Source: Macrostomum lignano (taxonomy: Eukaryota). From it: a DNA stretch of 64,000 bases. The notes below the pieces were generated by a model. That model searched no databases and had not been told where the DNA came from. It saw only the letters and a list, made by a program, of their open reading frames with translations. Position numbers and translations under genes: made by a program. This document shows positions 6,001-62,500 of this stretch, piece by piece (within the stretch, counting starts at the first letter, position 1; each line of letters starts with the position of its first letter). The DNA is taken from positions 50,448 to 114,447 of the forward strand of contig NIVC01003160.1 in assembly GCA_002269645.1 (NCBI GenBank), given 5' to 3'.

Positions 6001-6190
6001 TAGAATGGATTGCTAATCTATAGAATGGATTGCTAATATATAAAATGGATTGCTAATCTACAGAATGGATTTCTAGTCTATACAACGGATTGCTAATCTA
6101 TAGAATGAATTGCTAATCTATACATGCTAATCTATAGACTGGATTGATAATCTATAGAATAAATTTCTAGTCTATAGACTCGATCGCTAG
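1..6190 (+). repeat. 20-bp satellite/minisatellite array (GGATTGCTAATCTATAGAAT)n, about 300 units, runs off the left edge
   Basis: Direct reading. Recurrent variant blocks (e.g. GAATTGCTAATCTGTACATGCTAATC, TGCAGAACGG) show higher-order duplication. Each unit contains the palindrome TCTATAGA. Confidence 0.98.
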
Positions 6191-23030: not shown

Positions 23031-23650
23031 TGCTAATCTGGGGAGTTGGTGCTAATCTGGGGAGTTGGCGCTAATCTGGGGAGTTGGCGCTAATCTGGGG
23101 AGTTGGCGCTAATCTGGGGAGTTGGCGCTAATCTGGGGAGTTGGTGCTAATCTGGGGAGTTGGCGCTAATCTGGGGAGTTGGCGCTAATCTGGGGAGTTG
23201 GCGCTAATCTGGGGAGTTGGTGCTAATCTGGGGAGTTGGCGCTAATCTGGGGAGTTGGCGCTAATCTGGGGAGTTGGCGCTAATCTGGGGAGTTGGCGCT
23301 AATCTGGGGAGTTAGCGCTAATCTGGGGAGTTGGCGCTAATCTGGGGAGTTGGTGCTAATCTGGGGAGTTGGCGCTAATCTGGGGAGTTGGCGCTAATCT
23401 GGGGAGTTGGTGCTAATCTGGGGAGTTGGCGCTAATCTGGGGAGTTGGCGCTAATCTGGGGAGTTGGTGCTAATCTGGGGAGTTGGCGCTAATCTGGGGA
23501 GTTGGTGCTAATCTGGGGAGTTGGCGCTAATCTGGGGAGTTGGCGCTAATCTGGGGAGTTGGTGCTAATCTGGGGAGTTGGTGCTAATCTGGGGAGTTGG
23601 TGCTAATCTGGGGAGTTGGCGCTAATCTGGGGAGTGGTGCTAATCTGAGG
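23031..23650 (+). repeat. 20-bp minisatellite (GAGTTGGYGCTAATCTGGGG)n fused to the previous array
   Basis: Direct reading; abrupt switch of unit near 23030. Confidence 0.96.
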
Positions 23651-25699: not shown

Positions 25700-26275
25700 C
25701 AGTCGACAGAATAGCAGAATACAACAGAATGCATTGTTAGCCAGTCGAGCGTGAGACAATGTCACTGGGCGCGTTTCAGGGCCTGGGCGCGAACGTAGGC
25801 CGCACCGCCGGCGTCAGCCAGCAGGCAGTCGACGAAACGCCGAGTGCGCGCCTGTCCCAGCCGGTAGGGTGCCTGCAGCGTCAGCAGCAGCACCTCCTGC
25901 ACCGGCTGCGGGCAGAAGGACTCGGCTCGGATGATGTGGCCTGTCAGCTGAAGTCGCCGACGGCGCAACAGTTCGGTGGGACGGGACCGGCCGGTGCGGC
26001 GATAGAGTGCCGCTCGCAGCCGATCTTGAAGGCGGTGCATCGAGCGATGTTCGAGCGATTCCATTTGCGTCCAGGTCTCGGCGTTGTACAACAGGACCGT
26101 CTGGATCACCGCCTGGAACAACGCCGCCCTCTGGCGGTCAGGCGGACTGCAGGACAACCCTCACGGAAAGGAAGGCAGCCCAGGCAAGTCCACGGAAACT
26201 TTGCAGATCCTGGCAAACGTCAGGCACCAGACCACCAGGCCAACACTCGCCGCAACGCTTACCAGCAGGTCCCAT
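25700..26275 (-). mobile_element. RTE-clade LINE 3' fragment
   Basis: ALFQAVIQTVLLYNAETWT...RRRRLQLTGHIIRAE...GQARTRRFVDCLL are the post-RT motifs typical of RTE elements; TTG-rich 3' tail. Confidence 0.85.
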
Positions 26276-26759: not shown

Positions 26760-29060
26760 AGACCTCAACTCACTAATCTCTCCTTTCTGTACAAACTCTC
26801 AACTCACTAATCTCTCCATTCTGTACAAACTCAACTCACTTATCTCTCCACTCTGTACAAACTCTCAACTCACTTATCTCTCCTTTCTGTACAAACTCTC
26901 AACTCACTAATCTCTCCACTCTGTACAAACTCTCAACTCACTAATCTCTCCACTCTGTACAAACTCTCAACTCACTAATCTCTCCATTCTGTACAAACTC
27001 TCAACTCACTAATCTCTCCACTCTGTACAAACTCTCAACTCACTAATCTCTCCATTCTGTACAAACTCTCAACTCACTAATCTCTCCACTGTACAAACTC
27101 TCAACTCACTAATCTCTCCATTCTGTACAAACTCTCAACACACTAATCTCTACATTCTGTACAAACTCTCAACTCACTAATCTCTCCATTCTGTACAAAC
27201 TCTCAACTCACTTATCTCTCCTTTCTGTACAAACTCTCAACTCACTAATCTCTCCACTCTGTACAAACTCTCAACTCACTAATCTCTCCACTCTGTACAA
27301 ACTCTCAACTCACTAATCTCTCCATTCTGTACAAACTCTCAACTCACTAATCTCTCCACTGTACAAACTCTCAACTCACTAATCTCTCCATTCTGTACAA
27401 ACTCTCAACACACTAATCTCTACATTCTGTACAAACTCTCAACTCACTAATCTCTCCATTCCCTACAAACTCTCAACTCACTAATCTCTCCATTCTGTAC
27501 AAACTCTCAACTCACTAATCTCTCCATTCTGTACAAACTCTCAACTCACTAATCTCTCCATTCTGTACAAACTCAACTCACTTATCTCTCCACTGTACAA
27601 ACTCTCAACTCACTAATCTCTCCATTCTGTACAAACTCTCAACTCACTAATCTCTCCATTCTGTACAAACTCTCAACACACTAATCTCTCCATTCTGTAC
27701 AAACTCTCAACTCACTAATCTCTACATTCTGTACAAACTCTCAACTCACTAATCTCTCCATTCTGTACAAACTCTCAACTCACTAATCTCTCCATTCTGT
27801 ACAAACTCTCAACACACTAATCTCTACATTCTGTACAAACTCTCAACTCACTAATCTCTCCATTCCCTACAAACTCTCAACTCACTAATCTCTCCATTCC
27901 CTACAAACTCTCAACTCACTAATCTCTCTCCATTCCCTACAAACTCTCAACTCACTAATCTCTCTCCATTCCCTACAAACTCTCAACTCACTAATCTCTC
28001 TCCATTCCCTACAAACTCTCAACTCACTAATCTCTCTCCATTCCCTACAAACTCTCAAATTACTAATCTCTCTCCATTCCCTACAAACTCTCAAATTACT
28101 AATCTCTCTTCATTCCCTACAACTCTCAAATTACTAATCTCTCTCCATTCCCTACAAACTCTCAACTCACTAATCTCTCTCCATTCCCTACAAACTCTCA
28201 ACTCACTAATCTCTCTCCATTCCCTACAAACTCTCAACTCACTAATCTCTCTCCATTCCCTACAAACTCTCAAATTACTAATCTCTCTCCATTCCCTACA
28301 AACTCTCAAATTACTAATCTCTCTCCATTCCCTACAAACTCTCAAATTACTAATCTCTCTCCATTCCCTACAAACTCTCAAATTACTAATCTCTCTCCAT
28401 TCCCTACAAACTCTCAAATTACTAATCTCTCTCCATTCCCTACAAACTCTCAACTCACTAATCTCTCTCCATTCCCTACAAACTCTCAAATTAATAATCT
28501 CTCTCTTTATTCCCTACAAACTCTCAAATTACTAATCTCTCTTCATTCCCTACAACTCTCAAATTACTAATCTCTCTCCATTCCCTACAAACTCTCAACT
28601 CACTAATCTCTCTCCATTCCCTACAAACTCTCAACTCACTAATCTCTCTCCATTCCCTACAAACTCTCAACTCACTAATCTCTCTCCATTCCCTACAAAC
28701 TCTCAAATTACTAATCTCTCTCCATTCCCTACAAACTCTCAAATTACTAATCTCTCTCCATTCCCTACAAACTCTCAAATTACTAATCTCTCTCCATTCC
28801 CTACAAACTCTCAAATTACTAATCTCTCTCCATTCCCTACAAACTCTCAAATTACTAATCTCTCTCCATTCCCTACAAACTCTCAACTCACTAATCTCTG
28901 CATTCCCTACAAACTCTCAACTCAACCCTTCACTCCCTCGTCCTTCATGCTTTTCTCCCTTCACTCTCTGCCCCTTCACTCTCTCTCCATTCTGTACAGA
29001 CTCTCAAGTCACTAATCTCTACAGTCTACATTCTGTACAAAATCTGAACTCACTAATCTC
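26760..29060 (+). repeat. Minisatellite grading from a 34-bp unit (CTGTACAAACTCTCAACTCACTAATCTCTCCATT) to a 36-bp unit (CCCTACAAACTCTCAAATTACTAATCTCTCTCCATT)
   Basis: Direct reading; unit switch around 27870-27900. Confidence 0.96.
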
Positions 29061-37327: not shown

Positions 37328-37790
37328 GGCGTTGTTCCAGACGATTGAGACCGTCCTGTTGTACAACGCCGAGACCTGGACGCTGATGGATTCGCTCGAA
37401 CAGCAGGTCGACGCGGCGCACGCTGGCCTGCTACGCACCGCCTTCAAGATCGGCTACGAGCACTCTATCGCCGCGCCGGCCTGTCCCATCATAGCGAACT
37501 GTTGCATCGTCGGCGACTCCAGCTGGCAGGCCACATCATCCGAGCCGAGTCCTTCTGCCCGCAGCTGGTGCAGGAGGTGCTGCTGCTGACGCTGCAGGCA
37601 CCCTACCGGCGGGGACAGGCGCGCACTCGGTGTTTCGTCGACTGCCTGCTGGCTGATGCCGGCGCCCCGGAACCTGCCGGCGGTGCGGCCAGCGGTTCGC
37701 GTCTAGGCCCTAAAACGTGCCCTGTGACGTTGTCCTTGCCTCTCATGACTCGCTTGAATGGCTGACAGCGCATTTTGTTGTTGTTGTATG
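37328..37790 (+). mobile_element. RTE-clade LINE 3' fragment
   Basis: LFQTIETVLLYNAETWTLMDSLEQQVDAAHAGLLR...RRRLQLAGHIIRAES...; (TTG)n tail near 37775. Confidence 0.85.
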
Positions 37791-37799
37791 GAGGGCACA

Positions 37800-38225
37800 G
37801 CATCAGAGTTTCGTTCTTGCGCTGCATGCTCCATTCTGAGGCCCTGGCTCAGCTGTTTCAGACAGTCGTTGAGATTGTCTTGTTGTACAACTCTGAGACC
37901 GCGGCCATGCTGCGTGCGGCGTTCGGAGTGGGCAGCGGTCCAGGCAGCGAGACCAACGCCGCGCTCTACACGAGGGGCACGCCTGATGCGGCCTTCGGAC
38001 CTGCTGCGGGCGGGCGGCGACTTCGACTGGCTGGCCACGTCATCCGGTCGGAGGCTCGCTGCCCTGAGCCGCTAAACTCAGCTGGCCAAGGGCGAACGGC
38101 GAGATATTCTGACAGGCTTTTGACCGATGCTGGCGCCCCGGACCAAGCTGGGGGGGGGGGATGTGACGCGCTCTCTGACTTCTCCCCCCTTTCTGGCCAC
38201 TGCGTGGCTGGCGGGTGAAGTATTT
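37800..38225 (+). mobile_element. Older, degenerate RTE-clade 3' fragment directly downstream of the previous one
   Basis: LAQLFQTVVEIVLLYNSET...RRLRLAGHVIRSE. Confidence 0.75.
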
Positions 38226-39874: not shown

Positions 39875-42800
39875 TTAGGTCTGCGGCAGATAGTGCTCAA
39901 CCCGTTCGAGCAGTGAATCAGAGTAGCCGGGGCTGTAGTACTTCACAATCTCCTCCGGGTAGCAGTTGTTGATGGTGTTGATGTACTCCGCTAGAGCGCT
40001 GCCCGGCTCCGCTCTGATCTCCTGGATCTTCTTCAGCCCGCCTGAGGTGACGAACAGTCGGCGGGACTTGGGATTGTGCGGCAGCACCTTGCTGAACTGG
40101 GCCACCACGTGCTTGAGGATGTTGGCCGGGGCTTCTTGGAGCAGCGGCTCCAGAGCCTCGAGGTGGACGCACTTTTGAAGGATGTGTTTCAGCGCTTTCT
40201 TGGACTGCCAAGGTTAGGGTTTGAGGAAGTGGTTTACTCAGGATTCTTCAGGTAATACTCAGGATTTACATCTTCAGGTAATACTCAGGATTTACATCTT
40301 CAGGTAATACTCAGGATTTACATCTTCAGGTAATACTCAGGATTTACATCTTCAGGTAATACTCAGGATTTACATCTTCAGGTAATACTCAGGATTTACA
40401 TCTTCAGGTAATACTCAGGATTTACATCTTCAGGTAATACTCAGGATTTACATCTTCAGGTAATACTCAGGATTTACATCTTCAGGTAATACTCAGGATT
40501 TACATCTTCAGGTAATACTCAGGATTTACATCTTCAGGTAATACTCAGGATTTACATCTTCAGGTAATACTCAGGATTTACATCTTCAGGTAATACTCAG
40601 GATTTACATCTTCAGGTAATACTCAGGATTTACATCTTCAGGTAATACTCAGGATTTACATCTTCAGGTAATACTCAGGATTTACATCTTCAGGTTTCTT
40701 AAGACTCCAATTATCAGTCATTTAGACACTTGGAGTCACTTAGAACATTGCAGGTAGTTATCGCAATCGCAATCCTCACCTTGATCTGCAGATCCTCGCT
40801 AACATCGGGCCTCAAATAAGCTCTGAGCAGTTTGGGCAGCACATTGGCCTGAGCAACAGCCTTGGCGTGCTCGGGCGAGTGGCGGCCAATCTGGCCCAGA
40901 GACCAGGCCGCCGCAGCCTGGATGTGGTCCTCAGACTCGGTTTGCAGGACCGCGTCCAACGTTAGTACACCCTGCGGATGGGGGGGGCACGATCGTGATC
41001 TTAGGCTTTTGAAAGAATTGAGAAAATAAGCGCAGCGTGGGAGAGGCGGGATGGGGGAGCGGGGGCGGCAGCCAATGGAGGGTTTTGGGCTACGAGGCAA
41101 CCCCCATTTATTACTAGACTTGTAAAATATACGAGCTATATTTTAACTGCACTACTTACACTACAGATATCAGTAGACAAACTTGAAAATTTAATTTTTA
41201 TACAAATGTAGCTCGTAAATGTAATTGCACATGTAAATAGCTTATGAAGAACGTGTTAATAAATCGAGACGGGGATTTCAGACACAAGCTCACACAGGGT
41301 GCACAGGGGCCCTGACTTTCTAATCGTCAGGCATGTACAGTCTCCGTGCCTTTGGGGAATGAAAATGAACTCCAGGCACTCATTTTAGCGCCACAGGCAC
41401 TCATTTTAGCGCCGCAGGCACTCATTTTAGCGCCGCAGGCACTCATTTTAGCGCCGCAGGCACTCATTTTAGCGCCGCAGGCACTCATTTTAGCGCCGCA
41501 GGCACTCATTTTAGCGCCGCAGGCACTCATTTTAGCGCCGCAAGCACTCATTTTAGCGCCACAGGCACTCATTTTAGCGCCGCAGGCACTCATTTTAGCG
41601 CCGCAGGCACTCATTTTAGCGCCGCAGGCACTCATTTTAGCGCCGCAGGCACTCATTTTAGCGCCGCAGACACTCATTTTAGCGCCGCAGGCACTCATTT
41701 TGTCGCCCCGTTGGCGACGCCTCCATAGTTAATCCCCAGACAGATTATGTCTGTTAAAAATTACCCTGGACACAATGACAGCCATGGCCAGATTCTCAGA
41801 GTGGGCGGCCACATATCCAAGCATCATGACTCCCGGCAGGCGGACGTTCCCTCGACTGTCGCCGACAAAATCGACAATGGCGGCAACTCCGCCCGCATTC
41901 ACAATGAGCTGCGACAGCTCAGGCGTGTGCTTGGCAACCTCGCGGATGAGGGTGGCGCAGTTCTTGCGAACATATTCGTCCGGGTCCTTCAGGCAGGTCA
42001 GCACAGCCGGGAAGATTTCGGCTTCGACCACCATTTCGGCCAGATCGACGGAGTGCTTGGAGATCTGGGCGAGGGCTGAGAACACCTGGCGCTTCAGCTT
42101 GGCGTCAGGGTTCAGCACCATCTGGGCCAAGTGGGCGATCGCGCCTGGTATCGGGGGAGGCAGGGGACGGAGATTTTAATGGATTTTTCTCTTGCATTCT
42201 TATAATAATTTTCCACTTTCATCTCCCTCTCATCTCCCCCTCTCATCTCCCCTCCCATCTTTACTCTCATCTCCAATCCCATCTCCCCTCTCATCCCCTC
42301 TCATCTCCCCTCCCATCTTCACTCTCATCTCCCCTCCCATCTTCACTCTCATCTCTCCTCCCATCTCCCCACCCATCTCGCCTCTCACCCCCCTCTCATC
42401 CTCTTTCCTCACCCCCCTCTCATCCCCCCTCATCCCTCTCTCACCCCTTCTCATCTCCCCTCTCATCCCCTTCTCATCTCCTCTCTCAACACCTCTCATA
42501 ACGCCTCTTATCTCTTCTATCATGAGATTAGATGAGAAATATAGCAGTCTGACTCTTATTCCTCTCTTTCTTCCATAGATTGTCCAAATCCCCATCCCGT
42601 TCCAAACTTCCTCCCAACTCACCAGCGTCCACCACAGTCTGGGCGAGCTCTGGCGAGTGCTTAGAAATGTCGGACAGGGCCGAGGCGGCGATCCGCTTGA
42701 GGCTGAGGTCGGGCTCCTGCACGCACAGCACCAGGAGCGGCACCGCGCCAGCGTCCACCACAGCCTGGGCGAGCTCCGGCCCGTGTCTGGCGATGTAGCC

Positions 42801-45930: not shown

Positions 45931-47448
45931 ATGAAAGCGCACAATGAGCAGATTGAAAATGAGACTGAGGAGCAGCAGCAACTGCAGCAGCAATTGACCA
46001 GCAGCAGCAATGATCAGTCACCGTGTCTGTCAGCATCGACAGAATCTGTCCACTCAACGGGCTCAAGAGGTGTCCCCGAATGTCGAATTTGTCGCAGTTC
46101 ATCAACGGAGCTTCGCCGAGTTGGCGACAAGCTTCACCGGGTGAAATGCGCCTGCACTGGCAGCCTGGAGCACCTGTGCGCCCAGTGCTACCAGCGCTAT
46201 TACCTGGAACAGGAGTTGGAAAGGTGAGACATTTGAGAACTGATTTTGATCAACTTGCTGGGAATTGAGCCTTTTGTCTGCTGCCTTCCCAGCTGCCTTC
46301 CCAGCTCCCTTTCCTGCTGTCTTCCTTACTGCTTTCCCAGCTGACTTCGCATCTGTCTTACCAGCTACCTGATCTCAGCTATCTTTCTGCAGTAGCTTTC
46401 CCAGCTGTTTTCCCAGCTGTCTTACCGGCTGTTTTCCCAGCTGTCTTACTGGCTGTTTTCCCAGCTGTCTTACCGGCTGTTTTCCCAACTGTCTTATCAG
46501 CTGTTTTCCCAACTGTCTTATCAGCTGTTTTCTTAGCTGTCTTACCGGCTGTTTCCCAGCTGTCTTACCAGCTGCTTTCCCAGCTGTATTACCAGCTGCT
46601 GCTTTCCCAGCTGTCTTACCAGCTGCTTTCCCAGCTGTCTTACCAGCTGCTGCTTTCCCAGCTGTCTTACCATCTGTTTTCCTAGCTGTCTTACCAGCTG
46701 TTTTCCTAGCTGTCTTACCAGCTGTTTCCCAGCTGTCTTACCAGCTGTTTCCCAGCTGTCTTACCAGCTGATTTCCCAGCTGCCTTCTCTGCATTCCTGG
46801 TAATCTTCGAGGATGGCCCAACAACTGAGGATCTGTGGGAGGCTATCTTTCTCAAGCAGCCTGCAGCTCTATAAACAGCCTTCACTTCCAAGACCCTGTC
46901 TCTCTTGCAGATGCGAAATCTGTCGCCAGCCGATTGACATCGAGGAGAGCAACCCCGCGGCCAGGGCTCTGCTGAAGCTCCGACTTCGCTGCCGCTGCCG
47001 CCCCGGTTCCTCGTCGTCTGACGGGTCCCACAGAAGTCGACGCAATGACAGCGGCTGCATTGAGGGCCGCTTCCTGGCTTACGCCTGCTTCGTTCTAATA
47101 GTCTTTGTCGTAGTCTTTATCATATTCTTTGTCGCTGGGGAGAAGCTTCAGCAGCGAAGGCGCCTCAGGCAGCTGGCGGCACCCGGAGGAGTTGATGATG
47201 AAGCCTCGACAGCCGTCACAACGGCGCCGACGAGACCGATGTCGGATTCTGAGCGCCGAGTTGAAGCTGTGGTGTTCGCCGCGGTGGCCTGCATCAACGT
47301 GGCCATCGCGTTGATGTACATGGCCTGGCGGAGTTGCGGCAGCTGCGAGCGGCGCCGTCGACACCACAGTCAGTTTCCACAACAGCGGTCAGGTGACCGC
47401 GACGTGGAGGCTGTTGAGCGAATTGCTAACGAAAATCTAAGGGCTTGA
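45931..47448 (+). CDS. MARCH-like RINGv E3 ubiquitin ligase with two TM helices, 276 aa; join(45931..46223,46911..47448)
   Basis: CRIC...CACTGSLEHLCAQC...CEIC split by a phase-2 intron (AAG|gtgaga ... ttgcag|A). TM segments FLAYACFVLIVFVVVFIIFFVAG and VVFAAVACINVAIALMYMAW. Confidence 0.85.
46270..46790 (+). repeat. About 12-bp CAGCTG-core minisatellite (CCAGCTGTCTTA / CCAGCTGTTTTC) filling the RINGv intron
   Basis: Direct reading. Confidence 0.9.
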
Positions 47449-47504: not shown

Positions 47505-50215
47505 GAATTTAACGTTCAGCAGGGGAATTTGGGGATCAGAGTTTTACCTGAGGAATTTGGGGATCAGAGTTTAACCTGAGGAATTTGGGGATCAGATTGT
47601 TTTACCTGAGGAATTTGGGGATCAGAGTTTTATTTGAGGAACTTGGGGATCAGAGTTTTACCTGAGGAATTTGGGGATCAGAGTTTTACCTGAGGAATTT
47701 GGGGATAAGAGTTTTACCTGAGGAATTTGGGGATCAGAGTTTTACCTGAGGAATTTGGGGATCAGAGTTTTACCTGAGGAACTTGGGGATCAGAGTTTTA
47801 CCTGAGGAATTTGGGGATCAGAGTTTTACCTGAGGAATTTGGGGATCAGATCGTTTTACCTGAGGAATTTGGGGATCAGAGTTTTACCTGAGGAATTTGG
47901 GGATAAGAGTTTTACCTGAGGAATTTGGGGATCAAAGTTTTACATGAGGAATTTGGGGGATCAGAGTTTTACCTGAGGAATTTGGGGATCAGAGTTTTAT
48001 TTGAGGAACTTGGGGGATCAGAGTTTTACCTGAGGAATTTGGGGATCAGAGTTTTATTTGAGGAACTTGGGGATCAGAGTTTTACCTGAGGAATTTGGGG
48101 ATCAGAGTTTTACCTGAGGAATTTGGGGATCAGAGTTTTACCTGAGGAATTTGGGGATCAGATTTTTACCTGAGGAATTTGGGGGATCAGAGTTTTACCT
48201 GAGGAATTTGGGGGATCAGAGTTTTACCTGAGGAATTTGGGGATCAGTGTTTTACCTGAGGAATTTGGGGATCAGATCGTTTTACCTGAGGAATTTGGGG
48301 ATCAGAGTTTTACCTGAGGAATTTGGGGATCAGATCGTTTTACCTGAGGAATTTGGGGATCAGATCGTTTTACCTGAGGAATTTGGGGATCAGAGTTTTA
48401 CCTGAGGAATTTGGGGATCAGATCGTTTTACCTGAGGAATTTGGGGATAAGAGTTTTACCTGAGGAATTTGGGGATCAGAGTTTTACCTGAGGAATTTGG
48501 GGATCAGAGTTTTACATGAGGAATTTGGGGATCAGATCGTTTTACCTGAGGAATTTGGGGATCAGATCGTTTTACCTGAGGAATTTGGGGATCAGAGTTT
48601 TACCTGAGGAATTTGGGGATCAGAGTTTTACCTGAGGAATTTGGGGATCAGAGTTTTACATGAGGAATTTGGGGATCAGATCGTTTTACCTGAGGAATTT
48701 GGGGGATCAGAGTTTTACCTGAGGAATTTGGGGATCAGATCGTTTTACCTGAGGAATTTGGGGATCAGATCGTTTTACCTGAGGAATTTGGGGATCAGAT
48801 CGTTTTACCTGAGGAATTTGGGGATCAGATCGTTTTACCTGAGGAATTTGGGGATCAGAGTTTTACCTGAGGAATTTGGGGATCAGATCGTTTTACCTGA
48901 GGAATTTGGGGATAAGAGTTTTACCTGAGGAATTTGGGGATCAGAGTTTTACCTGAGGAATTTGGGGATCAGAGTTTTACCTGAGGAATTTGGGGATCAG
49001 AGTTTTACCTGAGGAATTTGGGGATCAGAGTTTTACCTGAGGAATTTGGGGATCAGAGTTTTACATGAGGAATTTGGGGATCAGATCGTTTTACCTGAGG
49101 AATTTGGGGATCAGATCGTTTTACCTGAGGAATTTGGGGATCAGAGTTTTACCTGAGGAATTTGGGGATCAGAGTTTTACCTGAGGAATTTGGGGATCAG
49201 AGTTTTACATGAGGAATTTGGGGATCAGATCGTTTTACCTGAGGAATTTGGGGGATCAGAGTTTTACCTGAGGAATTTGGGCATCAGATCGTTTTACCTG
49301 AGGAATTTGGGCATCAGATCGTTTTACCTGAGGAATTTGGGGATCAGATCGTTTTACCTGAGGAATTTGGGGATCAGATCGTTTTACCTGAGGAATTTGG
49401 GGGATCAGAGTTTTACCTGAGGAATTTGGGGATCAGATCGTTTTACCTGAGGAATTTGGGGATAAGAGTTTTACCTGAGGAATTTGGGGATCAGATCGTT
49501 TAACCTGAGGAATTTGGGGATCAGATCGTTTTACCTGAGGAATTTGGGGATCAGATCGTTTTACCTGAGGAATTTGGGGATCAGAGTTTTACCTGAGGAA
49601 TTTGGGGATCAGATCGTTTTACCTGAGGAATTTGGGGATCAGATCGTTTTACCTGAGGAATTTGGGGATCAGAGTTTTACCTGAGGAATTTGGGGATCAG
49701 ATCGTTTTACCTGAGGAATTTGGGGATAAGAGTTTTACCTGAGGAATTTGGGGATCAGATCGTTTAACCTGAGGAATTTGGGGATCAGATCGTTTTACCT
49801 GAGGAATTTGGGGATCAGATCGTTTTACCTGAGGAATTTGGGGATCAGAGTTTTACCTGAGGAATTTGGGGATCAGATCGTTTTACCTGAGGAATTTGGG
49901 GATAAGAGTTTTACCTGAGGAATTTGGGGATCAGAGTTTTACCTGAGGAATTTGGGGATCAGATCGTTTTACCTGAGGAATTTGGGGATAAGAGTTTTAC
50001 CTGAGGAATTTGGGGATCAGAGTTTTACCTGAGGAATTTGGGGATCAGATCGTTTTACCTGAGGAATTTGGGGATCAGATCGTTTTACCTGAGGAATTTG
50101 GGGATCAGAGTTTTACCTGAGGAATTTGGGGATCAGATCGTTTTACCTGAGGAATTTGGGGATCAGAGTTTTACCTGAGGAATTTGGGAATCACAGTTTT
50201 ACCTGAGGAATTCCT
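47505..50215 (+). repeat. 28/30-bp minisatellite (GAGGAATTTGGGGATCAGA[G/TCG]TTTTACCT)n
   Basis: Direct reading; includes an internal block duplication with a period of about 550 bp (48641 vs 49190). Confidence 0.97.
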
Positions 50216-50832
50216 TGACTATCACCACAAATACCTCACTATAACATTTATGTACATTAATGTATATCTTGTCTAAGCAAATTTATGTAACTTTGCATTA
50301 TTCAATAACAATAAGTATTTTCATGTACATTTTTCTAGTTTTATTTAATTAGTACTTTTAACAGTTTTTCTCATTTAAACTTTAAAGGGTTTTGTAATTT
50401 GTATTCAAAATCTGTACATAAAGCATTACTTGTTTATCTTGCTCAGTAGTAACATTGCCATTTCAAAAAAAATCTTCCAGTATAACAAAAGCGATTTGTT
50501 GTTGTATTTCGTCTCCTAACAAACAGTTGACTTTATCTGATCAACTATCGATATTTCTTTATCTATCATTTTTTTCTACTGTAACAAAAAAGCCAAGTTT
50601 TTTCTGTCGAAATAAATAAAAAAGAGCCGATAATATTGCTTTTTGTTTTAATAATGCAGCACGTCAAAAGTTGTTGATATTGAATGAAAAATAAACCCTC
50701 TCGTTGGATAAACTTGTTTTAATTGGTTAAACATTTCATCCTCTCAATCCAGTTCAAATCCAATAGGTCATTTAAGGTCACCGAATAGAATCGTTATCAA
50801 AATTAGCAAGAGGACCGATTTGCCCGACGATT

Positions 50833-50846
50833 GTTGCCATGGCAAC
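50833..50846. promoter_or_regulatory. Perfect palindromic RFX X-box GTTGCCATGGCAAC in a small GC-rich island
   Basis: Exact consensus match; target gene unclear. Confidence 0.5.
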
Positions 50847-51049
50847 CAGGGCAGCGCCGCCGGCAATTCCAAATTGGGCGAAGTCCGCCGAGTAGCTGCA
50901 AGATGAAACCGGGTGCTTAAATTATTCGGTGCCTGCATGCGTATTTCTAGATTTGTTTGAAGCAGTTCGATCAAAATTTTATTAGACATCCCGTCTCAAT
51001 TCCAGCCTTAGAAGATAAGGATGAGATACAGGAGCCTATTCAGAATAAC

Positions 51050-51410
51050 AGCTATGAGCGTTCCTGAAACTCGTGATATATCAGCATTCCTGAATCTCAT
51101 ATATGAAGATTCCTGATTCTCATATATCTGAATTTCTGAATCTCCTATATCAGAATATGAAACATTCCGAATCTTTTATATTACCATTCCTGAATCCCAT
51201 ATATATGAGCATTCCTGAATCTCACCTATGAGCATTCCTGAATCTCACCTATGAGATTCCTGAATCTCACCTATGAGCATTCCTGAATCTCACCTATGAG
51301 CATTGCTGAATCTCACCTATGAGCATTCCTGAATCTCACCTATGAGCGTTTCTGAATCTCACCTATGAGCGTTCCTGAATCTCACCTATGAGCGTTCCTG
51401 AATCTCACCC
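51050..51410 (+). repeat. 23-bp minisatellite (GAATCTCACCTATGAGCRTTCCT)n
   Basis: Direct reading; the left part is degenerate. Confidence 0.92.
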
Positions 51411-54400
51411 TACAAGATGACACAATGAAACCCACCTCGAAACAGCTCCCACAGCTGAGCCAATCTGCCACAGAATCTTCTGTTTGAGTGAAGCGCTCGG
51501 CACTTGACGGGTCAGTTCGTCGGAGGCCAGCAAAGTGGACAAGGTCTTGTCGAAATTGACGGTCGGCTGACTCGGTAGCGACACAGTCTGATGATCAGGT
51601 TTGCCAAGTGAGATGAGTCGAGAGCTGTTAAGAACGGAGGGCTCTTCAATAACGACGTCGAACTTAGTGCTGGATGATTTTGTGCTGAGCACCGGCTGGG
51701 AGCCAAAATTGGTAACGCGCTTTGACTGCTTGGACAAATGGACTCGCTCCGCAGCCATAGTCAGGCGTCGGTCGTTCGACACGGAACGACGTTCTCGTGA
51801 CAGCCGTCGGTCCATCGACACAACGCGACGCTCAGCAGCTCTAGTCAGACGTCGGTCAGTCGACACAGCTCGACGCTCAGCAGCCCTAGTCAGGCGTCGG
51901 TCGTTCGACACGGAACGACGTTCTCGTGACAGCCCGGTCCATCGACACAACGCGACGCTCAGCAGCTCTAGTCAGACGTCGGTCAGTCGACACAGCGCGA
52001 CGCTCAGCAGCTCTAGTCAGACGTCGGTCAGTCGACACAGCGCGACGCTCAGCAGCCCTAGTCAGACGCAGGTCAGTCGACACGGAACGACGCTCTCGTG
52101 ACAGCCGTCGGTCAGTCGACACAGCGCGACGCTCAGCAGCTCTAGTCAGACGTCGGTCAGTCGACACAGCGCGACGCTCAGCAGCTCTAGTCAAACGTCG
52201 GTCAGTCGACACAGCGCGACGCTCAGCAGCCCTAGTCAGACGTCGGTTGTTCGACACGGAACGACGCTCTCGTGACAGCCGTCGGTCAGTCGACACAACG
52301 CGACGCTCAGCAGCTCTAGTCAGACGTCGGTCAGTCGACACAGCGCGACGCACAGAAGCCCTAGAGAGGCGTCGGTCGTTCGACACGGAACGACGCTCAG
52401 AAGCTCTAGTCAGCCGTCGGTCAGTCGTCACAGCGCGACGCTCAGCAGCTCTAGTCAGGCGTCGTCGTTCGACACGGAGCGACGCTCTCGTGACAGCCGT
52501 CGGTCCATCGACACAGCGCGACGCTCAGCAGCTCTAGTCAGACGTCGGTCGTTCGACACGGAACGACGCTCTCGTGACAGCCGTCGGTCCATCGACACAG
52601 CGCGACGCTCAGCAGCTCTAGTCAGACGTCGGTCAGTCGACACAGAACGACGCTCTCGTGACAGCCGTCGGTCAGTCGACACAGCGCGACGCTCAGCAGC
52701 TCTAGTCAGACGTCGGTCAGTCGAGACAGCGCGACGCTCAGCAGCTCTAGTCAGACGTCGGTCAGTCGACACAGCGTGACGCTCAGCAGCCTTAGTCAGA
52801 CGTCGGTCGTTCGACACGGAACGACGCTCTCGTGACAGCCGTCGGTCCATCGACACAGCGCGACGCTCAGCAGCTCTAGTCAGACGTCGGTCAGTCGACA
52901 CTGCGCGACGCTCAGCAGCTCTAGTCAGACCTCGGTCGTTCGACACGGAACGAGGCTCTCGTGACAGCCGTCGGTCAGTCGACACAGCGCGACGCTCAGC
53001 AGCTCTAGTCAGACGTCGGTCAGTCGACACAGCGCGACGCTCAGCAGCCCTAGTCAGACGTCGGTCGTTCGACACGGAACGACGCTCTCGTGACAGCCGT
53101 CGGTCCATCGACACAGCGCGACGCTCAGCAGCTCTAGTCAGACGTCGGTCAGTCGACACAGCGCGACGCTCAGCAGCTCTAGTCAGGCGTCGGTCGTTCG
53201 ACACGGAACGACGCTCTCGTGACAGCCGTCGGTCCATCGACACAACGCGACGCTCAGCAGCTCTAGTCAGACGTCGGTCAGTCGACACAGCGCAACGCTC
53301 AGCAGCTCTAGTCAGACGTCGGTCAGTCGACACAGCGCGACGATCAGCAGCCCTAGTCAGACGTCGGTCGTTCGACACGGAACGACGCTCTCGTGACAGC
53401 CGTCGGTCAGTCGTCACAGCGCGACGCTCAGCAGCTCTAGTCAGACGTCGGTCAGTCGACACAGCCCGACGCTCAGCAGCTCTAGTTAGGCGTCGGTCGT
53501 TCGACACGGAACGACGCTCTCGTGACAGCCGTCGGTCCATCGACACAACGCGACGCTCAGCAGCTCTAGTCAGACGTCGGTCAGTCGACACAGCGCGACG
53601 CTCAGCAGCTCTAGTCAGGCGTCGGTCGTTCGACACGGAACGACGCTCAGAAGCTCTAGTCAGCCGTCGGTCAGTCGTCACAGCGCGACGCTCAGCAGCT
53701 CTAGTCAGACGTCGGTCAGTTGACACAGCGCGACGCTCAGCAGCTCTAGTCAGGCGTCGGTCGTTCGACACGGAGCGACGCTCTCGTGACAGCCGTCGGT
53801 CCATCGACACAGCGCGACGCTCAGCAGCTCTAGTCAGACGTCGGTCGTTCGACACGGAACGACGCTCTCGTGACAGCCGTCGGTCCATCGACACAGCGCG
53901 ACGCTCAGCAGCTCTAGTCAGACGTCGGTCGGTCGACACAGCGCGACGCTCAGCAGCTCTAGTCAGACGTCGGTCAGTCGACACAGCGCGACGCTCAGCA
54001 GCCTTAGTCAGAGGTCGGTCGTTCGACACAGAACGACGCTCTCGTGACAGCCGTCGGTCAGTCGACACAGCGCGACGCTCAGCAGCTCTAGTCAGACGTC
54101 GGTCAGTCGACACTGCGCGACGCTCAGCAGCCCTAGTCAGACGTCGGTCGTTCGACACGGAACGACGCTCTCGTGACAGCCGTCGGTCAGTCGTCACAGC
54201 GCGACGCTCAGCAGCTCTAGTCAGACGTCGGTCAGTCGACACAGCGCGACGCTCAGCAGCTCTAGTCAGGCGTCGGTCGTTCGACACGGAGCGACGCTCT
54301 CGTGACAGCCGTCGGTCCATCGACACAACGCGACGCTCAGCAGCTCTAGTCAGACGTCGGTCAGTCGACACAGCGCGACGCTCAGCAGCTCTAGTCAGAC

Positions 54401-54968
54401 GTCGGTCAGTCGACACAGCGCGACGATCAGCAGCTCTAGTCAGACGTCGGTCAGTCGACACTGCGCGACGCTCAGCAGCCCTAGTCAGACGTCGGTCGTT
54501 CGACACGGAACGACGCTCTCGTGACAGCCGTCGGTCCATCGACACAGCGCGATGCTTAGCAGCTCTAGTCAGACGACGGTCAGTCGACACAGCGCGACGC
54601 TCAGCAGCTCTAGTCAGACGTCGGTCAGTCGACACAGCGCGACGCTCAGAAGCCCTAGAGAGGCGTCGGTCGTTCGACACGGAACGACGCTCAGAAGCTC
54701 TAGTCAGGCGTCGATCGTTCGACACGGAACGACGCTCTCGTGACAGCGGACTGCTCTGTGGGAGCCTTCGCACATCAACTCTTGACTGACGAGCGTCATT
54801 CACTACCGAAGTCTTCCCGACATCCGACACAGAGATGCGGCTGCCCGGCTGTGGTCCAGCAGGAGCGGCATCTCCGGCGTTAACTCCGACTTCAGCGATG
54901 TGACAGTCGATTGTCTTCCTGGTCATGAAGACCAGAGTAATCAACAGCAGCAGCTTGACGTCCACCAT
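51405..54968 (-). CDS. Putative secreted Arg-rich repeat protein (about 1190 aa) built from about 70 units of RRLTRAAERRAVSTD (45 bp) and RRLSRERRSVSND (39 bp); two small deletions (about 52465 and 51935) break the frame as assembled
   Basis: Acceptor ccacttccag|ATG at 54968; signal-peptide-like MVDVKLLLLITLVFMTRKTIDC; unique N- and C-terminal domains in the same frame; both unit lengths are multiples of 3; several unit variants are synonymous. Confidence 0.65.
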
Positions 54969-55418
54969 CTGGAAGTGGAGAAAAGTTTGAGAAAATTTGA
55001 CAGCTTTTAGATTAGTATTGCAAAAAAGCATGTTTTTCGAATATTTAATCCCTTTAGCATTTATCAATTTCTTAGCCAAGATACATGTACCGTCCCGGGA
55101 AAATTTCTGATCGAACAGTGCAAATTCGAACAAAATCGGTCAAGCCATTCAGGAGAAAATCGATTTCGTACAAACAAACAACTCATTTTTAGTACATAGG
55201 AAAAAGGTAGTTTTGCAGGAAGGTTGCTGGATCAGAGGATCCAGCTTTAGTGGGCACCTTAGGCTTGATAGGCATATATAGTTTTCACTAGGCCTCTTGG
55301 ACGACAACTGGTCTGAAGTTTGTATACAATACTTGCCTGGCGATGAGAAAGTACCCGCATGCGTTTTGTACCAGTGTCTCCGCTTGCCTATACTTGCTGG
55401 CTCCGGGTCAATTTTAGG

Positions 55419-55599: not shown

Positions 55600-57060
55600 T
55601 ATTCAAAGATTCTATATGTATATCTATATCGCAATTAAAGATTCCATATCCATATCGCAAGATTCTATATCTATATCGCAAGATTCCATATCTATATCGC
55701 AAGATTCCATATCTATATCGCAAGATTCCATATCTATATCGCAAGATTTCAAATCTATATCGCAAGATTTCAAATCTATATCGCAAGATTTCAAATCTAT
55801 ATCGCAAGATTTCAAATCTATATCGCAAGATTCCATATCTATATCGCAAGATTTCAAATCTATATCGCAAGATTCTATATCTATATCGCAAGATTCCATA
55901 TCTATATCGCAAGATTCCATATCTATATCGCATGATTATATATCTATATCGCAAGATTTCAAATCTATATTGCAAGATTCTATATCTATATCGCAAGATT
56001 CCATATCTATATCGCAAGATTCCATATCTATATCGCATGATTATATATCTATATCGCAAGATTCCATATCTATATCGCAAGATTCCATATCTATATCGCA
56101 AGATTCCATATCTATATCGCAAGATTCCATATCTATATCGCAAGATTCCATATCTATATCGCAAGATTCCATATCTATATCGCAAGATTCCATATCTATA
56201 ACGCAAGATTCCATATCTATATCGCAAGATTCCATATCTATATCGCAAGATTCCATATCTATATCGCAAGATTCTATATCTATATCGCAAGATTCCATAT
56301 CTATATCGCAAGATTCTAATCTATATCGCAAGATTCCATATCTATATCGCAAGATTCCATATCTATATCGCAAGATTCCATATCTATATCGCAAGATTCC
56401 ATATCTATATCGCAAGATTACATATCTATATCGCAAGATTCCATATCTATATCGCAAGATTCCAAATCTATATCGCAAGATTCCATATCTATATCACAAG
56501 ATTCCATATCTATATCGCATGATTCTATATATCTATATCGCAGGATTCTATATATAGCAAGATTCCATATCTATATCGCAAGATTCCATATCCATATCGC
56601 AAGATTCCATATCTATATCGCAATTAAAGATTCCATATCTATATCGCAAGATTCCATATCTATATTGCAAGATTCCAAATCTATAACGCAAGATTCCATA
56701 TCTATATTGCAAGATTCCATATCTATAACGCAAGATTCCATATCTATATCGCATGATTCCATATCTATATCGCAAGATTCTATATCTATAACGCAAGATT
56801 CCATATCTATTTGCAAGATTCCATATCTATATCGCAAGATTCCATATCCATATCGCAAGATTCCATATCTATATCGCAAGATTCTATATCTATATCGCAA
56901 GATTCCATATCTATATCGCAAGATTCCATATCTATATCGCAAGATTCCATATCTATATCGCAAGATTCCATATCTATATCGCAAGATTCTATATCTATAT
57001 CGCAAGATTCCATATCTATATCGCAAGATTCCATATCTATATCGCAAGATTCCATATCTG
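55600..57060 (+). repeat. 21-bp minisatellite (GATTCCATATCTATATCGCAA)n, probably in the 5' intron of the Arg-rich gene
   Basis: Direct reading; a minus-strand donor CCAAG|gtgagt lies near 57176. Confidence 0.96.
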
Positions 57061-59561: not shown

Positions 59562-62500
59562 TCACTCCGCCTTGCTGCGCGACCCAGCAAGGCCACGCTG
59601 TTGCCAAGCCCCAATTACCATAGACAGCAACGGTAACGAGCCAACCAGACAGATTAGGTAAACAATCAAAATCCCCATAGCAACTAATTTGTCGCTAATT
59701 GCCACAGTATCTACAGTCAGATTAACGGCTCCCGTAAGCAGATTAGCCAATAGGAAATAAGCCAGACTACACCGGCCAATCAGAGCTAGCACAGGCGAAC
59801 ACGACCGATCGATGGAGCCGAGGCAGAGCAGCCGGCCGATGGTGAGCATCAACAGCACCTGACAGCAGGCGGCTAGGCAGGTGATCAGGAATCCGGCATT
59901 GAACAGAAGCCGAGAAGGCTCAGTTACGATAGGCGGCAACTTGACAGAGGCCACAGTCAGGGCCCATGGCAGGGCCACGATGGCTAGCAGTAGCAGGGGC
60001 CACGAGATCAGGCGGTTGGCGTCTGGGATGACGAGAGGATTGAATAATTCTATTGTAGCGGTTAACTGTTAGTTTATTTCAGAAACTTGTGCTATAGATC
60101 ACTATAGATCGTATGATATAGACATCCTAATACAAAAATTGATTGTTTATAGACAACATTGATCATAGTCTATAGAAACGCTATAGAGATCCCAGTCTAT
60201 AAACACGTCATATAGATCCTAGAGTATAAAAAACGCCATATATAAATAGATCCCAGTCTAAACACGCGCTATATATAGATAGATCCCAGTCTATAGATAC
60301 ACTACATAGATCCCAGTCTATAGATACACTACATAGATCCACTACATAGATACACTACATAGACGCTATTATTCTGGTGCTTGACTGGGTGCTACGGACT
60401 GCTCTGCCTTCCAACGACGACGGCTTCCTGCTGCGGCGACGCGTGGGTCGACGCCAACCGGAGACACGGCTCAGCGTGCTTGGCTACGCCGATGACCTCG
60501 CCCTGCTGTCCTCGACCGTCGAGGGCGCCAACGACAGCTGGATAGGCTGGTTGCCGTTGCGGCGAGCGTCGGCCTGGTGGTCAACACGCAGAAGACCGTC
60601 GTGCTATGCGTGCCGGACGACACCGAGGTTGCAATCTTCTGCGAGGCGCTGACGGACAGGCGAGTGAGCTTCCAAGATGTCAGCAGTTCGTCTACCTCGG
60701 CGGTCTGGTTCCCGACGTTCGCGAGGATCTGCGGCGTCGCCGAGGACTTGCCTGGGCTGCCTTTCGTTCTATAAGGTCAGTCCTGCAGTCCGAGGCCCTA
60801 CCGGACCGCCAGAGGGCGGCGCTGTTCCAGGCGGTGATCGAAACCGTCCTGTTATACAACGCCGAGACCTGGACGCTGACAGACTCGCTCGAGGCTCAAG
60901 TCGACGCGGCGCACGCTGGCCTGCTGCGCGCCGCCTTCAAGATCGGCAACGAGCGAGTCACCAACATGGCGCTCTACCATCGCGCCGGCCTGGCCCGTCC
61001 TAGCGATCTGCTGCGCCGTTGGCGACTCCAGCTGGCAGGCCACGTCATCCGCGCCGAGGCTACTGTCCGGAGCCGGTGCAGGAGGTGCTGCTACTTACGT
61101 TGCAGGCACCCTACCGGCGGGACAAGCGAGGACACGGCGCTACGTCGACTGTCTGCTGGCTGACGCCGGCGCCCCGGACTCTGCCGGCGGTGCGGCCTTT
61201 GTTTGCGCCCAAGCTTCGAAGCGTGCCATCTGACGTTGCTTTTTACGACCCGGCAGCGTACTCTGTTGTTTTGTTGTATAGATCCCAGTCTATAGATACA
61301 CTACATAGATCCCAGTCTATAGATACACTACATAGATCCCAGTCTATAGATACACTACATAGATCCCAGTCTATAGATACACTACATAGATCCCAGTCTA
61401 TAGATACACTACATAGATCCCAGTCTATAGATACACTACATAGATCCCAGTCTATAGATACACTACATAGATCCCAGTCTATAGACACGCCATATATTGA
61501 TTCCAGTCTATAGAGTATAGATACACTATATAGATCCCAATCTATAGATATACTATATAGATCCGGGTCTTTAGACACGCTATATAGAGCATGGTCTATA
61601 GACACGCTGCGCATAGAGTAAGATCTCAGTCTTACGATGTCGAAAGATCTCAATCTCTAGACACGCTAGAGATACTAGCCTAGCAATGAAACCCGTCGCA
61701 CCTGCAGCAGTCGACTCAGTTCCGACGCGCAATCGTCGACCAATAGCGGCGCCGGCGCAATAGATGGCGCAGTAGGGCGGCAGCGACATCAGGCCCTCCT
61801 TGTTGGCCACCAGCGGCCACAACAGGTGCCGATCGCCGCTAGCCAAAAGAAACTCGGCCCCACCGAACGGCAGCACCAGGAGGCAGTGTCCGGCGGCGAG
61901 AACCAGCGACCAGAGCCCGGCCGGCCGGACAGCGCAGGCCAGACCGCTCGGAGACAGGCCAGGGTGATGAAGAAGTTCCAGTGCACTCCATACTCGGTGA
62001 CGTGCTCCTGCGTGTCGTGGATTGTTTGGTTGGAGGCGGGGTTGTTAGCCTTCATCCACAACAACATCCTCGGAATAAAACGCCTCGAATGTATGTAAAA
62101 TTCCAAACAAGATCATTAGCATAAAAATCCCTAATAGATATACCTGTAGATATCCCCAAGATGAGAATTCCCAATAAGATCCCCAGATGAAAAATCCCCA
62201 AAAATATCCCCCAAGATGAGAAATCCCCAAATATCTTAAGGATGAGAAATCCCCAATAAGAAAAAATCTTCCAAAATATCCCTTAAATGGGAAATCCCCA
62301 AAATTTCCCTAAGATGGAAATTCCCAAAAATATTCGCAAGATTAGAAATCCAAATCTCAAGCAAAAATCCTCGAATAGAAAAATCCCTTTAAAAGATCCA
62401 GGATATTACCTGATAATCCGAAGCCTTCACAGCCAGAGTCCTCGCCAGTCCGAGCAGCGCCAGCGGCAGACAGCGCCAACCAGGGATCGGCGCCATCGCG

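Follow-up and report, generated by a model that had tools for sequence, protein, structure and literature searches.

Minus-strand positions 54968 to 50778 of a stretch of Macrostomum lignano DNA (contig NIVC01003160.1, assembly GCA_002269645.1, Mlig_3_7; the whole stretch of 64,000 nucleotides that was analysed is referred to as the window) very probably constitute a single two-exon gene, in which a minisatellite array forms the main body of exon 1. From N- to C-terminus, the product is predicted to comprise a signal-peptide-like start and a short linker, then repeats of 15 and 13 residues that together span about 1,000 residues, and finally a low-complexity stalk rich in Ser and Thr, a transmembrane helix, and a tail of 13-14 residues. 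The favoured reading is an orphan type I membrane protein that crosses the membrane once and whose repeats form a cationic helical rod. The overall probability of this reading is put at roughly 0.6, a figure that blends high confidence in the gene structure and architecture, taken jointly, with a distinctly tentative view of topology and function. The product is probably a membrane-tethered polycation, not a free secreted peptide precursor or a glue.

Tandem Repeats Finder (TRF) placed the array at 51801-54737 with periods of 45, 129, and 174 bp, and its segmentation on the minus strand, from 54746 to 51765, yielded 69 units, including 48 of 45 bp (consensus LTRAAERRAVSTDRR), 19 of 39 bp (consensus LSRERRSVSNDRR), one of 38 bp, and one of 43 bp. 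The two main unit lengths follow one another irregularly (bAAAAbAAAAbAAbAAbAAAb..., where A is 45 bp and b is 39 bp), and higher-order blocks of 129 bp (AAb) and 174 bp (AAAb) were found in the array. The preliminary description of this DNA had reported about 70 repeats of these lengths punctuated by Arg-Arg, which agrees with the present count. The synonymous variants that it had named (AGA/AGG, CGT/CGC, and GCT/GCA) were present among the units together with CGG, and its statement that RR pairs follow an acidic residue held for 129 of the 132 pairs, which are preceded by D or E. Variation at the Arg positions was confined to single units of the array. The two aberrant units correspond to the losses of 1 bp and 2 bp that had been placed near 52465 and 51935. 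In the 38-bp unit, one C is gone between 52464 and 52463 (GAACGAC^GACGCC against the expected GAACGACCGACGCC), and a TGA follows eight bases further on; in the 43-bp unit, AC is gone between 51935 and 51934 (GGACCG^GGCTG against the expected GGACCGACGGCTG), where the original frame is regained. The minus-strand array had also been described as stop-free, which does not hold as assembled: the 1-bp loss cuts the open frame off after 762 codons (stop at 52455), and the reading stays shifted for about 530 bp until the 2-bp loss; the antisense strand is nearly open too.

Coding on the minus strand, as earlier proposed, was borne out by the flanks, the unit variants, the scarcity of indels, the intron, and the existing gene models. 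The unique flanks are stop-free in one frame over 221 codons (74 upstream of the array, 109 downstream, and 38 in the last exon), an openness that was reached in 0 of 20,000 composition-preserving shuffles, and the N-terminal and C-terminal unique parts share the same genomic frame. Unit variation was biased across codon positions, with 21 of the 39 distinct variants at position 3 (chi-square over the three phases, p = 0.023), and synonymous variants likewise amounted to 21/39 against an expectation of 31% (binomial p ~0.003); these statistics rest on about 39 variant types, and variants common to many units are copies of few events, which weakens the case. The other arrays in the window with a unit divisible by three (3n) and at least 10 variants had no phase bias (p = 0.23-1.0). 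Only two non-3n indels occurred in the 2.9 kb of the array, while the other 3n arrays had 41 indel runs, 40 of them non-3n. Furthermore, GenBank models on the minus strand cover both ends of the locus, and a canonical GT-AG intron on the same strand joins the two exons with the frame kept across the junction. The RNA-seq counts recorded for the sister copy of the gene add to these signs.

A non-coding, GC-rich minisatellite within a long transcriptional unit, with the open reading frame (ORF) and the gene models arising as ORF-calling by-products on precursor RNA, is a very improbable alternative. The window is full of minisatellites, many of which contain ORFs of 130-370 codons, two of the six frames are open over the array, the frame is interrupted twice, and there is no homologue in other organisms, all of which would be expected of such a sequence. 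It does not fit, however, with unique flanks whose openness was never matched by shuffling, with the excess of third-position and synonymous changes that the control arrays lack, with the scarcity of non-3n indels, or with signal-like and transmembrane-like segments located exactly at the two ends and joined in frame. ORF length was rejected as proof of coding: any stop-free 3n unit gives an indefinitely long ORF, the antisense strand has a run of 655 codons, and ORFs of 130-370 codons occur in many of the window's non-coding arrays. ORF length is thus meaningless as a sign of coding in the M. lignano genome. Nor were units divisible by three as distinguishing as had been suggested; 45 and 39 bp are indeed both multiples of three, but TRF listed nine further entries with 3n periods in the window (12, 18/36, 21, 24, 27, 30, 33, 42, and 48 bp), where such periods are frequent.

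The plus-strand frame over 51790-54745 reads as an Arg-rich sequence (RRSVDTARRSAALV / RRSFDTERRSRD) with three stops and an open run of 655 codons, and this openness is a by-product of the CGN, GAC, and GCN codon content of the sense strand. That the plus-strand frame is the coding one is exceedingly improbable. It does share third positions with the minus-strand frame and has the same synonymous count (21/39), and the third-position test cannot tell the two frames apart because both score 21 synonymous changes. On the other hand, the plus-strand frame contains three internal stops, closes 40 bp beyond the array at 54787, and has no start codon in the ORF listing. In this frame, one unit variant becomes a stop, and the replacements found at high copy number are less conservative, an example being R to S in 20 units. 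Both annotated models, as well as the GT-AG intron, lie on the opposite strand. Besides the near-openness of the antisense frame, two observations weigh against coding on the minus strand: the frame is broken as assembled, with a stop at 52455 and resumption only past 51935, and neither a transcript or read that spans the array nor an intact copy was seen, the sister contig stopping inside the array.

The anatomy of the gene could be followed from an acceptor-like sequence to a candidate polyadenylation signal. A polypyrimidine tract and AG (TTTTCTCAAACTTTTCTCCACTTCCAG, 54969..54995) abut the start codon, with the context TTTTCTCCACTTCCAG|ATG and TTCCAG directly before the ATG at 54968. This acceptor may serve as a cis-splice site or as a spliced-leader trans-splice site. 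The signal-peptide-like N-terminus behind a splice acceptor that had been noticed earlier was found as the segment MVDVKLLLLITLVFMTRKTIDC (54903..54968), directly after TTCCAG|ATG, which consists of a short charged n-region, a hydrophobic core of 10 residues (residues 6-15), and a polar c-region. Its 17-residue Kyte-Doolittle mean is 1.73, and it would be cleaved as a signal peptide. A unique linker of 52 residues (HIAEVGVNAGDAAPAGPQPGSRISVSDVGKTSVVNDARQSRVDVRRLPQSSP, 54747..54902) follows in frame with both the start and the array (51765..54746). Downstream of the array, the segment 51436..51764 comprises a degenerate last unit (LTMAAERV) and a unique stretch of about 109 residues rich in Ser, Thr, Pro, and Gln, and ends at the donor CGAG|GTGGGT.

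The preliminary description had recognized this unique C-terminal region, and the 109 codons after the array agree with it; it had let the gene end at 51405, though, and missed an exon. The gene splices instead through a GT-AG intron of 540 nt (50896..51435; 3' end ...TTGCAG) from 51436|51435 to a last exon at 50778..50895. This exon encodes (S)YSADFAQ, a predicted transmembrane helix (FGIAGGAALVAMATIVG, 50873-50823), and a polar tail of 13-14 residues before a TGA (50780-50778). The Kyte-Doolittle value of FGIAGGAALVAMATIVG, 1.92, is the highest in the whole protein. The splice reproduces the junction ...AVGAVS|SYSADF... of a protein from a sister copy of the gene (P0002, described below), whose C-terminus reads ...IGSAVGAVS|SYSADFAQFGIAGGAALVAMATIVGANRSSANFDNDSIR. 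The first 126 residues of this protein match the window to 51438, two bases short of the end of exon 1 at 51436, and the remainder was located by tblastn at 50895-50778. An ATTAAA at 50718..50723, 55 nt past the stop codon, is a candidate polyadenylation signal. The intron contains a 23-bp minisatellite (CTCATAGGTGAGATTCAGGAATG, 51185-51409, minus strand) with about 10 copies near its 5' end. Each copy carries AG|GTGAGA, which matches the 5' splice-site consensus almost perfectly, and the copies follow shortly after the real donor CGAG|GTGGGT as a row of tandem decoy or alternative donors, all past an in-frame TGA at 51407-51405.

GenBank already lists the locus as a pair of uncharacterised fragments, to which the present analysis adds the complete architecture of an orphan repeat protein. 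A composite query made of the N-terminus, three units, and the C-terminus retrieved four proteins, all from M. lignano. The 5' model in GenBank (P0001, 180 aa) starts at the ATG at 54968 and ends without a stop codon 540 nt into the gene. A second model of 204 aa ends at 50778, and the spliced translation from 51932 also has 204 aa; the identity of the two rests on this match in length. A near-identical sister copy lies at the end of contig NIVC01003432.1 (L001) and is annotated as the 165-aa 'hypothetical protein BOX15_Mlig000613g4' (P0002). The Mlig_3_7 annotation was built from short-read RNA-seq assembled on the genome and cut at evidence of trans-splicing and poly(A), with ORFs called by TransDecoder (PMC5730564). 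Short RNA-seq reads cannot be positioned within a repeat of about 3 kb, which explains why the gene is represented by two separate 'hypothetical protein' entries. The UniRef name 'Kinesin motor domain-containing protein' on a further protein (P0003, 157 aa) was dismissed as a label artefact, as this sequence is a frameshift-ridden copy of the 3' end of the gene and has no recorded Pfam domain.

The sister contig allowed the two frame-breaking deletions to be weighed. Across the 1.6 kb of non-repetitive DNA that follows the array, the window differed from the sister contig by no substitution and by six one-base indels, most of which were changes in the length of short base runs. Two of the six lie in the last exon, at 50825 and 50809, where the window stands alone against the sister contig and P0004, a protein from the independent ML2 assembly. 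At these sites, 16 bp apart, a G is missing from the window and a T is added to it, so that GANRSS becomes GQIGPL with the frame kept; the pair would stem from two assembly errors that compensate each other, or else from a true allele with a compensated frameshift. The assembly was made with Canu from PacBio reads and was polished with short reads by Pilon (PMC5730564). The sister contig retains the C that the window has lost at the 1-bp site, but another C, six bases off, is missing from it, and so is the 129-bp block that bears the 2-bp loss. The sister array carries about 30 small indels per 1.2 kb and stops inside the array at the end of the contig. Both deletions are plausibly, but unproven, PacBio assembly errors. 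Residual deletions of one or two bases are plausible in the array because it was assembled from PacBio reads and short-read polishing probably cannot reach inside 3 kb of repeats, and the loss of one base from a CC pair fits a PacBio consensus error.

It is possible, though doubtful, that this copy is instead a recent pseudogene, in which the deletions are real, translation ends at 52455, and the full protein comes only from another copy in the neopolyploid genome, if from any. The deletions stand in a polished assembly, the redundancy of the genome is large (180 Mb in duplicated blocks; PMC5730564), and the two contigs differ by a 129-bp block, which implies distinct copies or alleles. Against this, six one-base indels without a single substitution in 1.6 kb are the signature of PacBio consensus errors, two indels in the last exon are contradicted by two independent sequences, and the interior of a 3-kb array is likely out of reach of polishing. 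The array is otherwise free of frame-shifting indels, and its out-of-frame segment bears no further damage. The block itself consists of three extra units (129 bp) in the window (52065-51932) relative to the sister contig (L001, ~1080-1190). Judged from the two sequences, it may reflect either copy-number variation of a coding variable number tandem repeat (VNTR) between genome copies, or a collapse in the sister assembly.

The conceptual protein, in which both gaps were filled from the unit consensus, has 1,217 aa, a mass of 141 kDa, a net charge of +208, and an isoelectric point (pI) of 12.0. It is composed of 28.5% Arg, 12.6% Ala, 11.8% Ser, 12.6% Asp+Glu, 1.2% Pro, 1.2% Gly, 1.2% Lys, and 0.2% Cys, with Ser+Thr at 20%. 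Each unit of 15 or 13 residues has five Arg, one Glu, and one Asp and a net charge of +3; the repeat is thus strongly cationic and not, as one of the earlier proposals had it, zwitterionic. The protein contains 19 full furin motifs (RERR, one per 39-bp unit), 86 minimal R-x-x-R motifs, 66 R-R-x-S/T motifs, 86 S-x-D/E motifs, and two N-glycosylation sequons. When it is split at RR, the most frequent products are LTRAAE (36 times), AVSTD (27 times), SVSND (18 times), and LSRE (18 times).

For 190 aa of repeats (53663-53094), AlphaFold2 on a single sequence predicted one continuous helix over residues 2-189 with a mean predicted local distance difference test (pLDDT) of 94.8, which is at odds with a flexible string of peptides; it counts against a helical rod that this mode of prediction tends towards confident long helices for charged low-complexity repeats. 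The hydrophobic moment peaked at 96-100 degrees per residue (mean ~0.51), with a narrow Leu/Ala/Thr face opposite an Arg-rich face. No acid-to-base i, i+4 pairs were found in six units, and the absence of these pairs, which stabilise known single helices, is a further point against the rod. For P0002, AlphaFold2 gave a mean pLDDT of 52, with a long coil and short helices followed by a helix over the hydrophobic segment. A classical single-alpha-helix (SAH) domain was ruled out for lack of i, i+4 salt bridges, as was a glycosylphosphatidylinositol (GPI) anchor at the C-terminus on account of the 13-14 polar residues after the hydrophobic stretch.

Homology searches supported the earlier impression that the protein belongs to no described family. 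Pfam had no family for P0001 or P0002. No homologue outside M. lignano was found among 5.8 billion clustered proteins or 1.84 billion representatives, with queries that included the composite of N-terminus, repeats, and C-terminus, the repeats alone, and, in a full HMMER scan of the 1.84 billion representatives, P0002. A sequence search of the PDB with 190 aa of repeats returned nothing at E values up to 10, and a suspected likeness of LTRAAERRAVSTD to the cytoplasmic helix of phospholamban received no support from it. A match of the 837-aa ORF to PF25557 (GAUT_1, E 1.7e-8) was discarded, as no single stretch passes and the score is a sum over low-complexity sequence. On these sequence comparisons, the gene is an orphan restricted to the M. 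lignano lineage.

The last exon encodes a hydrophobic helix and a short tail; therefore, the primary product is predicted to be membrane-anchored. In the favoured reading, the part facing the lumen or the cell exterior would form a very long amphipathic helical rod, which would measure about 150 nm if helical throughout and have a net charge of about +208. The array would behave as a coding VNTR in which unequal exchange of blocks of 129 and 174 bp adds and removes units, and selection would hold its frame and residue pattern. As a tethered polycation, the protein would most plausibly bind polyanions such as the glycocalyx, mucus, a granule matrix, or microbial surfaces; it would act in differentiated somatic cells, somewhat enriched anteriorly, and the rod could be shed or cut at the 19 RERR furin-type sites. 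Several points weigh against this topology and function. The signal-peptide and transmembrane calls are heuristic, and the C-terminal hydrophobic helix is Gly/Ala-rich with moderate hydropathy. The positive-inside rule would favour a domain of +208 in the cytosol.

A quite unlikely alternative accordingly places the rod in the cytosol: the N-terminal segment is not cleaved, the C-terminal helix (or both ends) serves as a tail anchor, and the Arg-rich helix offers its 66 R-R-x-S/T motifs as potential kinase sites. Such an arrangement has in its favour those motifs, the positive-inside rule, a transmembrane helix that ends 13-14 residues from the C-terminus, and a predicted long helix that recalls tail-anchored coiled-coil tethers. 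It has to contend with the hydrophobic stretch at the extreme N-terminus, which is laid out as a signal peptide, with flanking charges that, as read from the sequence, are not opposed to translocation, and with the fact that M. lignano secretes polycationic proteins (PMC6410801).

The preliminary description had proposed two functions for a secreted product, one of which was a polyprotein precursor. In this proposal, convertases and a carboxypeptidase would act at every D/E-R-R to release more than 100 copies of LTRAAE, AVSTD, LSRE, and SVSND per molecule, or cleavage at RERR only would leave about 19 cationic fragments. The 132 RR pairs (129 after D or E), 19 furin-type R-x-[KR]-R sites (RERR), and 86 minimal R-x-x-R sites are what a precursor would need, the start resembles a signal peptide, Arg positions vary in single units only, and a fall of 1.6 log2 units in transcript level from head to whole worm is compatible with neural or anterior gland cells. 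Amidation is usual for flatworm neuropeptides and needs Gly before the basic pair; here Asp or Glu, never Gly, stands before RR in 129 of the 132 pairs, which leaves no amidation. The products after trimming of RR would be neutral or acidic 4-6-mers, the precursor bears a membrane anchor, its continuous predicted helix would be a poor convertase substrate, and the irregular spacing of RERR (1-5 long units apart) would give non-uniform fragments. A precursor is rather unlikely on this balance, and the free secreted form in which it had been proposed is not supported, as the last exon encodes the predicted membrane helix FGIAGGAALVAMATIVG.

The transcript data bear on both proposed functions. 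Mlig000613.g4 is included in the positional RNA-seq re-analysis of Brand et al. (PMC7336406, Table S8) with a length of 498 nt, which equals the coding sequence of P0002; otherwise, Mlig000613 turned up neither in a full-text search of the literature nor in the supplements of PMC5816591 and PMC5730564. The values were 761 reads (expression -7.40) in fragment A (head), 475 reads (-8.33) in fragment B (plus the testis region), 416 reads (-8.67) in fragment C (plus the ovary region), and 338 reads (-9.00) in fragment D (whole worm). What was counted is the 3' fragment of 498 nt that belongs to the sister copy, and this also counts against the favoured reading. Mlig000613.g4 is classed as 'Non-Specific', that is, outside the tail, testis, and ovary classes, has no neoblast or germline label from fluorescence-activated cell sorting, and is unresponsive to the social environment (PMC7336406). 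The drop of 1.6 log2 units from A to D compares with roughly 0.5-0.9 in most non-specific genes in the first part of the table and suggests a moderate bias of the transcript towards the anterior. However, the prefix Mlig000613 also denotes a cluster of transcriptional units with several genes in them, and two other genes of the cluster share the trend, which likewise weakens the favoured reading.

The second proposed function was that of a protein secreted without processing by adhesive, rhabdite, or prostate glands, as a glue, a coacervate, or a component of the seminal fluid. The species does secrete polycationic repeat proteins, such as the Lys/Arg-rich (KR) regions of Mlig-ap1 (PMC6410801). 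The start resembles a signal peptide, the 86 S-x-[DE] motifs may be used by secretory-pathway kinases, and body-wide rhabdite glands are compatible with the positional data. The tail fragment houses the prostate gland cells and adhesive organs, and tail candidates need a log2 increase of more than 2 (PMC5977470). The tail-versus-rest change (D-C) of Mlig000613.g4 was -0.33 against this threshold of +2; since prostate glands and adhesive organs are in the tail and the transcript is not enriched there, suggestions of a glue or seminal-fluid protein are disfavoured. The transcript has no social plasticity, the protein ends in a transmembrane exon, and it is without the Cys-rich, EGF, vWF, and TSP domains of the Mlig-ap1 and Mlig-ap2 kind. 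A glue or seminal-fluid protein is thus very unlikely.

Mlig-ap1 had also been offered as a parallel, which proved to be a limited one. Both proteins belong to the same species and are very Arg-rich, repetitive, and polycationic, both have no homologues elsewhere, and both would pass through the secretory pathway, in the present case as judged from the signal-like start. The KR regions of Mlig-ap1, however, have a pI of 14.4-14.6, comprise more than 3,600 aa on their own, and flank Cys-rich, EGF, and other domains within a protein of more than 5,000 aa that is made in the tail adhesive glands (PMC6410801). The protein described here has a pI of 12.0, 12.6% Asp+Glu, 1.2% Lys, 0.2% Cys, no domains, and a transmembrane exon, and its transcript, measured on the 3' fragment of the sister copy, is not tail-specific. 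Neither the composite-query search nor the HMMER scan returned a match of the Mlig-ap1 kind.

The tethered mucins offer a parallel in layout, although no sequence homology connects them with the repeat gene. MUC1-type tethered mucins have a signal peptide, a GC-rich coding VNTR with a 3n unit, a juxtamembrane region, one transmembrane helix, and a cytoplasmic tail. As in these proteins, a 3n coding VNTR (45/39 bp, 69 copies) lies between a signal-like start and a transmembrane exon, and, where mucin arrays vary in copy number, the window differs from its sister contig by one 129-bp block. In contrast to the Pro/Thr/Ser-rich mucin repeat, which forms an extended glycosylated rod, the present repeat consists of Arg, Ala, Ser, Thr, Val, Asp, and Glu with 1.2% Pro and is predicted to be helical; there is no SEA or other Pfam domain, and the tail has only 13-14 residues. 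Precursors of FMRFamide-type and flatworm npp peptides combine a signal peptide with tandem short peptides at dibasic sites. The repeat gene shares with them tandem short peptides bounded by RR and the RERR furin-type motif, but differs by having no amidation Gly, no spacer peptides, 4-6-residue neutral or acidic products, a membrane anchor, and a predicted continuous helix.

ER/K single alpha-helix domains are characterised by dense i to i+4 pairs of Glu with Lys/Arg and by a near-neutral net charge. The present repeat resembles these domains, and Arg/Glu-rich repeats of the trichohyalin type, in being a long charged low-complexity sequence predicted as one helix (2-189 of 190). Unlike ER/K helices, it has 0 i, i+4 pairs, a charge of +3 per unit, an apolar Leu/Ala face with a moment of ~0.5, and a predicted secretory rather than cytosolic location. 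Giantin and golgin-84 are tail-anchored coiled-coil tethers whose transmembrane helix lies a few residues from the C-terminus; for this type of protein, a distance of up to about 30 residues is expected. A long predicted helical rod and a transmembrane helix that ends 13-14 residues before the stop are common to such tethers and the repeat protein, whereas the latter has an N-terminal signal-like segment (hydrophobic residues 6-15), repeats of 15/13 residues that are not heptads, and no homology to them.

A more far-reaching version of the favoured reading would make the protein a new cell-surface type: a membrane-anchored, rigid, cationic single helix of about 150 nm and about 70 units, encoded by a hypervariable coding minisatellite, diced by convertases at D/E-R-R and RERR into many short peptides, species-specific, and varying in copy number between genome copies. 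This proposal is unlikely, but if it were true, the gene would embody a fast-evolving surface or signalling trait. If either the rod or the peptide-dicing reading is true, a new architecture would be added to cell-surface and secretory biology; otherwise, the locus would serve as a benchmark for the long-read annotation of repeat-encoded genes. At least one 'minisatellite' of M. lignano is, with the confidence given above for the gene structure, a translated exon, and current annotation breaks its gene into two fragments; genes of such a type would be systematically missed or truncated in short-read transcriptomes. An extreme composition without relatives in billions of sequences also makes a clean case of a young lineage-restricted gene that would have arisen from repeat expansion. 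Transgenesis, RNA interference, and in situ methods are available in M. lignano, so that the location and role of the protein are directly testable.

The window contained several other features. An ORF at 59562-59978 (minus strand) matched the C-terminal end of the Pfam family GWT1 (PIG-W-type GPI inositol acyltransferase; E 4.5e-17). It represents the last exon of a gene on the same strand, 4.6 kb upstream of the start of the repeat gene, an arrangement that is compatible with both genes being in one long transcriptional unit. An exon at 41729-42130 (minus strand) encodes armadillo/HEAT repeats (Arm, E 2.4e-9), and its gene presumably resembles SPAG6/PF16. The syntenic gene on the sister contig (L001 8515-12225) has a product of 508 residues on record with Arm matches and extends beyond the fetched locus. 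The interval 14584-16166 (plus strand) contains two overlapping ORFs, in which a run of glutamines (CAG repeat, 15271-15321) and weak matches to C2H2 zinc fingers occur; they are probably exons of a Q-rich zinc-finger gene. Three ORFs at 25762-26157 (minus strand), 37775-38218 (plus strand), and 60606-61163 (plus strand) have no Pfam match and share the motif ALFQAVI(E/Q)TVLLYNAETW...RLQL(T/A)GH(I/V)IR; by this motif, they look like C-terminal remnants of one retroelement family.

Minisatellites made up a large share of the 64 kb, and the largest arrays had units of 20-34 bp. Examples were located at 4-6189, 21141-23642, 26764-28924, 47524-50212, and 55638-57059, and many of them contained ORFs of 130-370 codons in several frames. 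At 46280-47448 (plus strand), a 12/48-bp array (GCTGTCTTCCCA) adjoins an ORF of 211 aa with two hydrophobic stretches, Arg/Cys-rich segments, and a sub-threshold match to DUF1218. The GCTGTCTTCCCA array is not coding because its variants are spread evenly over the three phases (13/13/13) and all of its indel runs (11/11) are non-3n.

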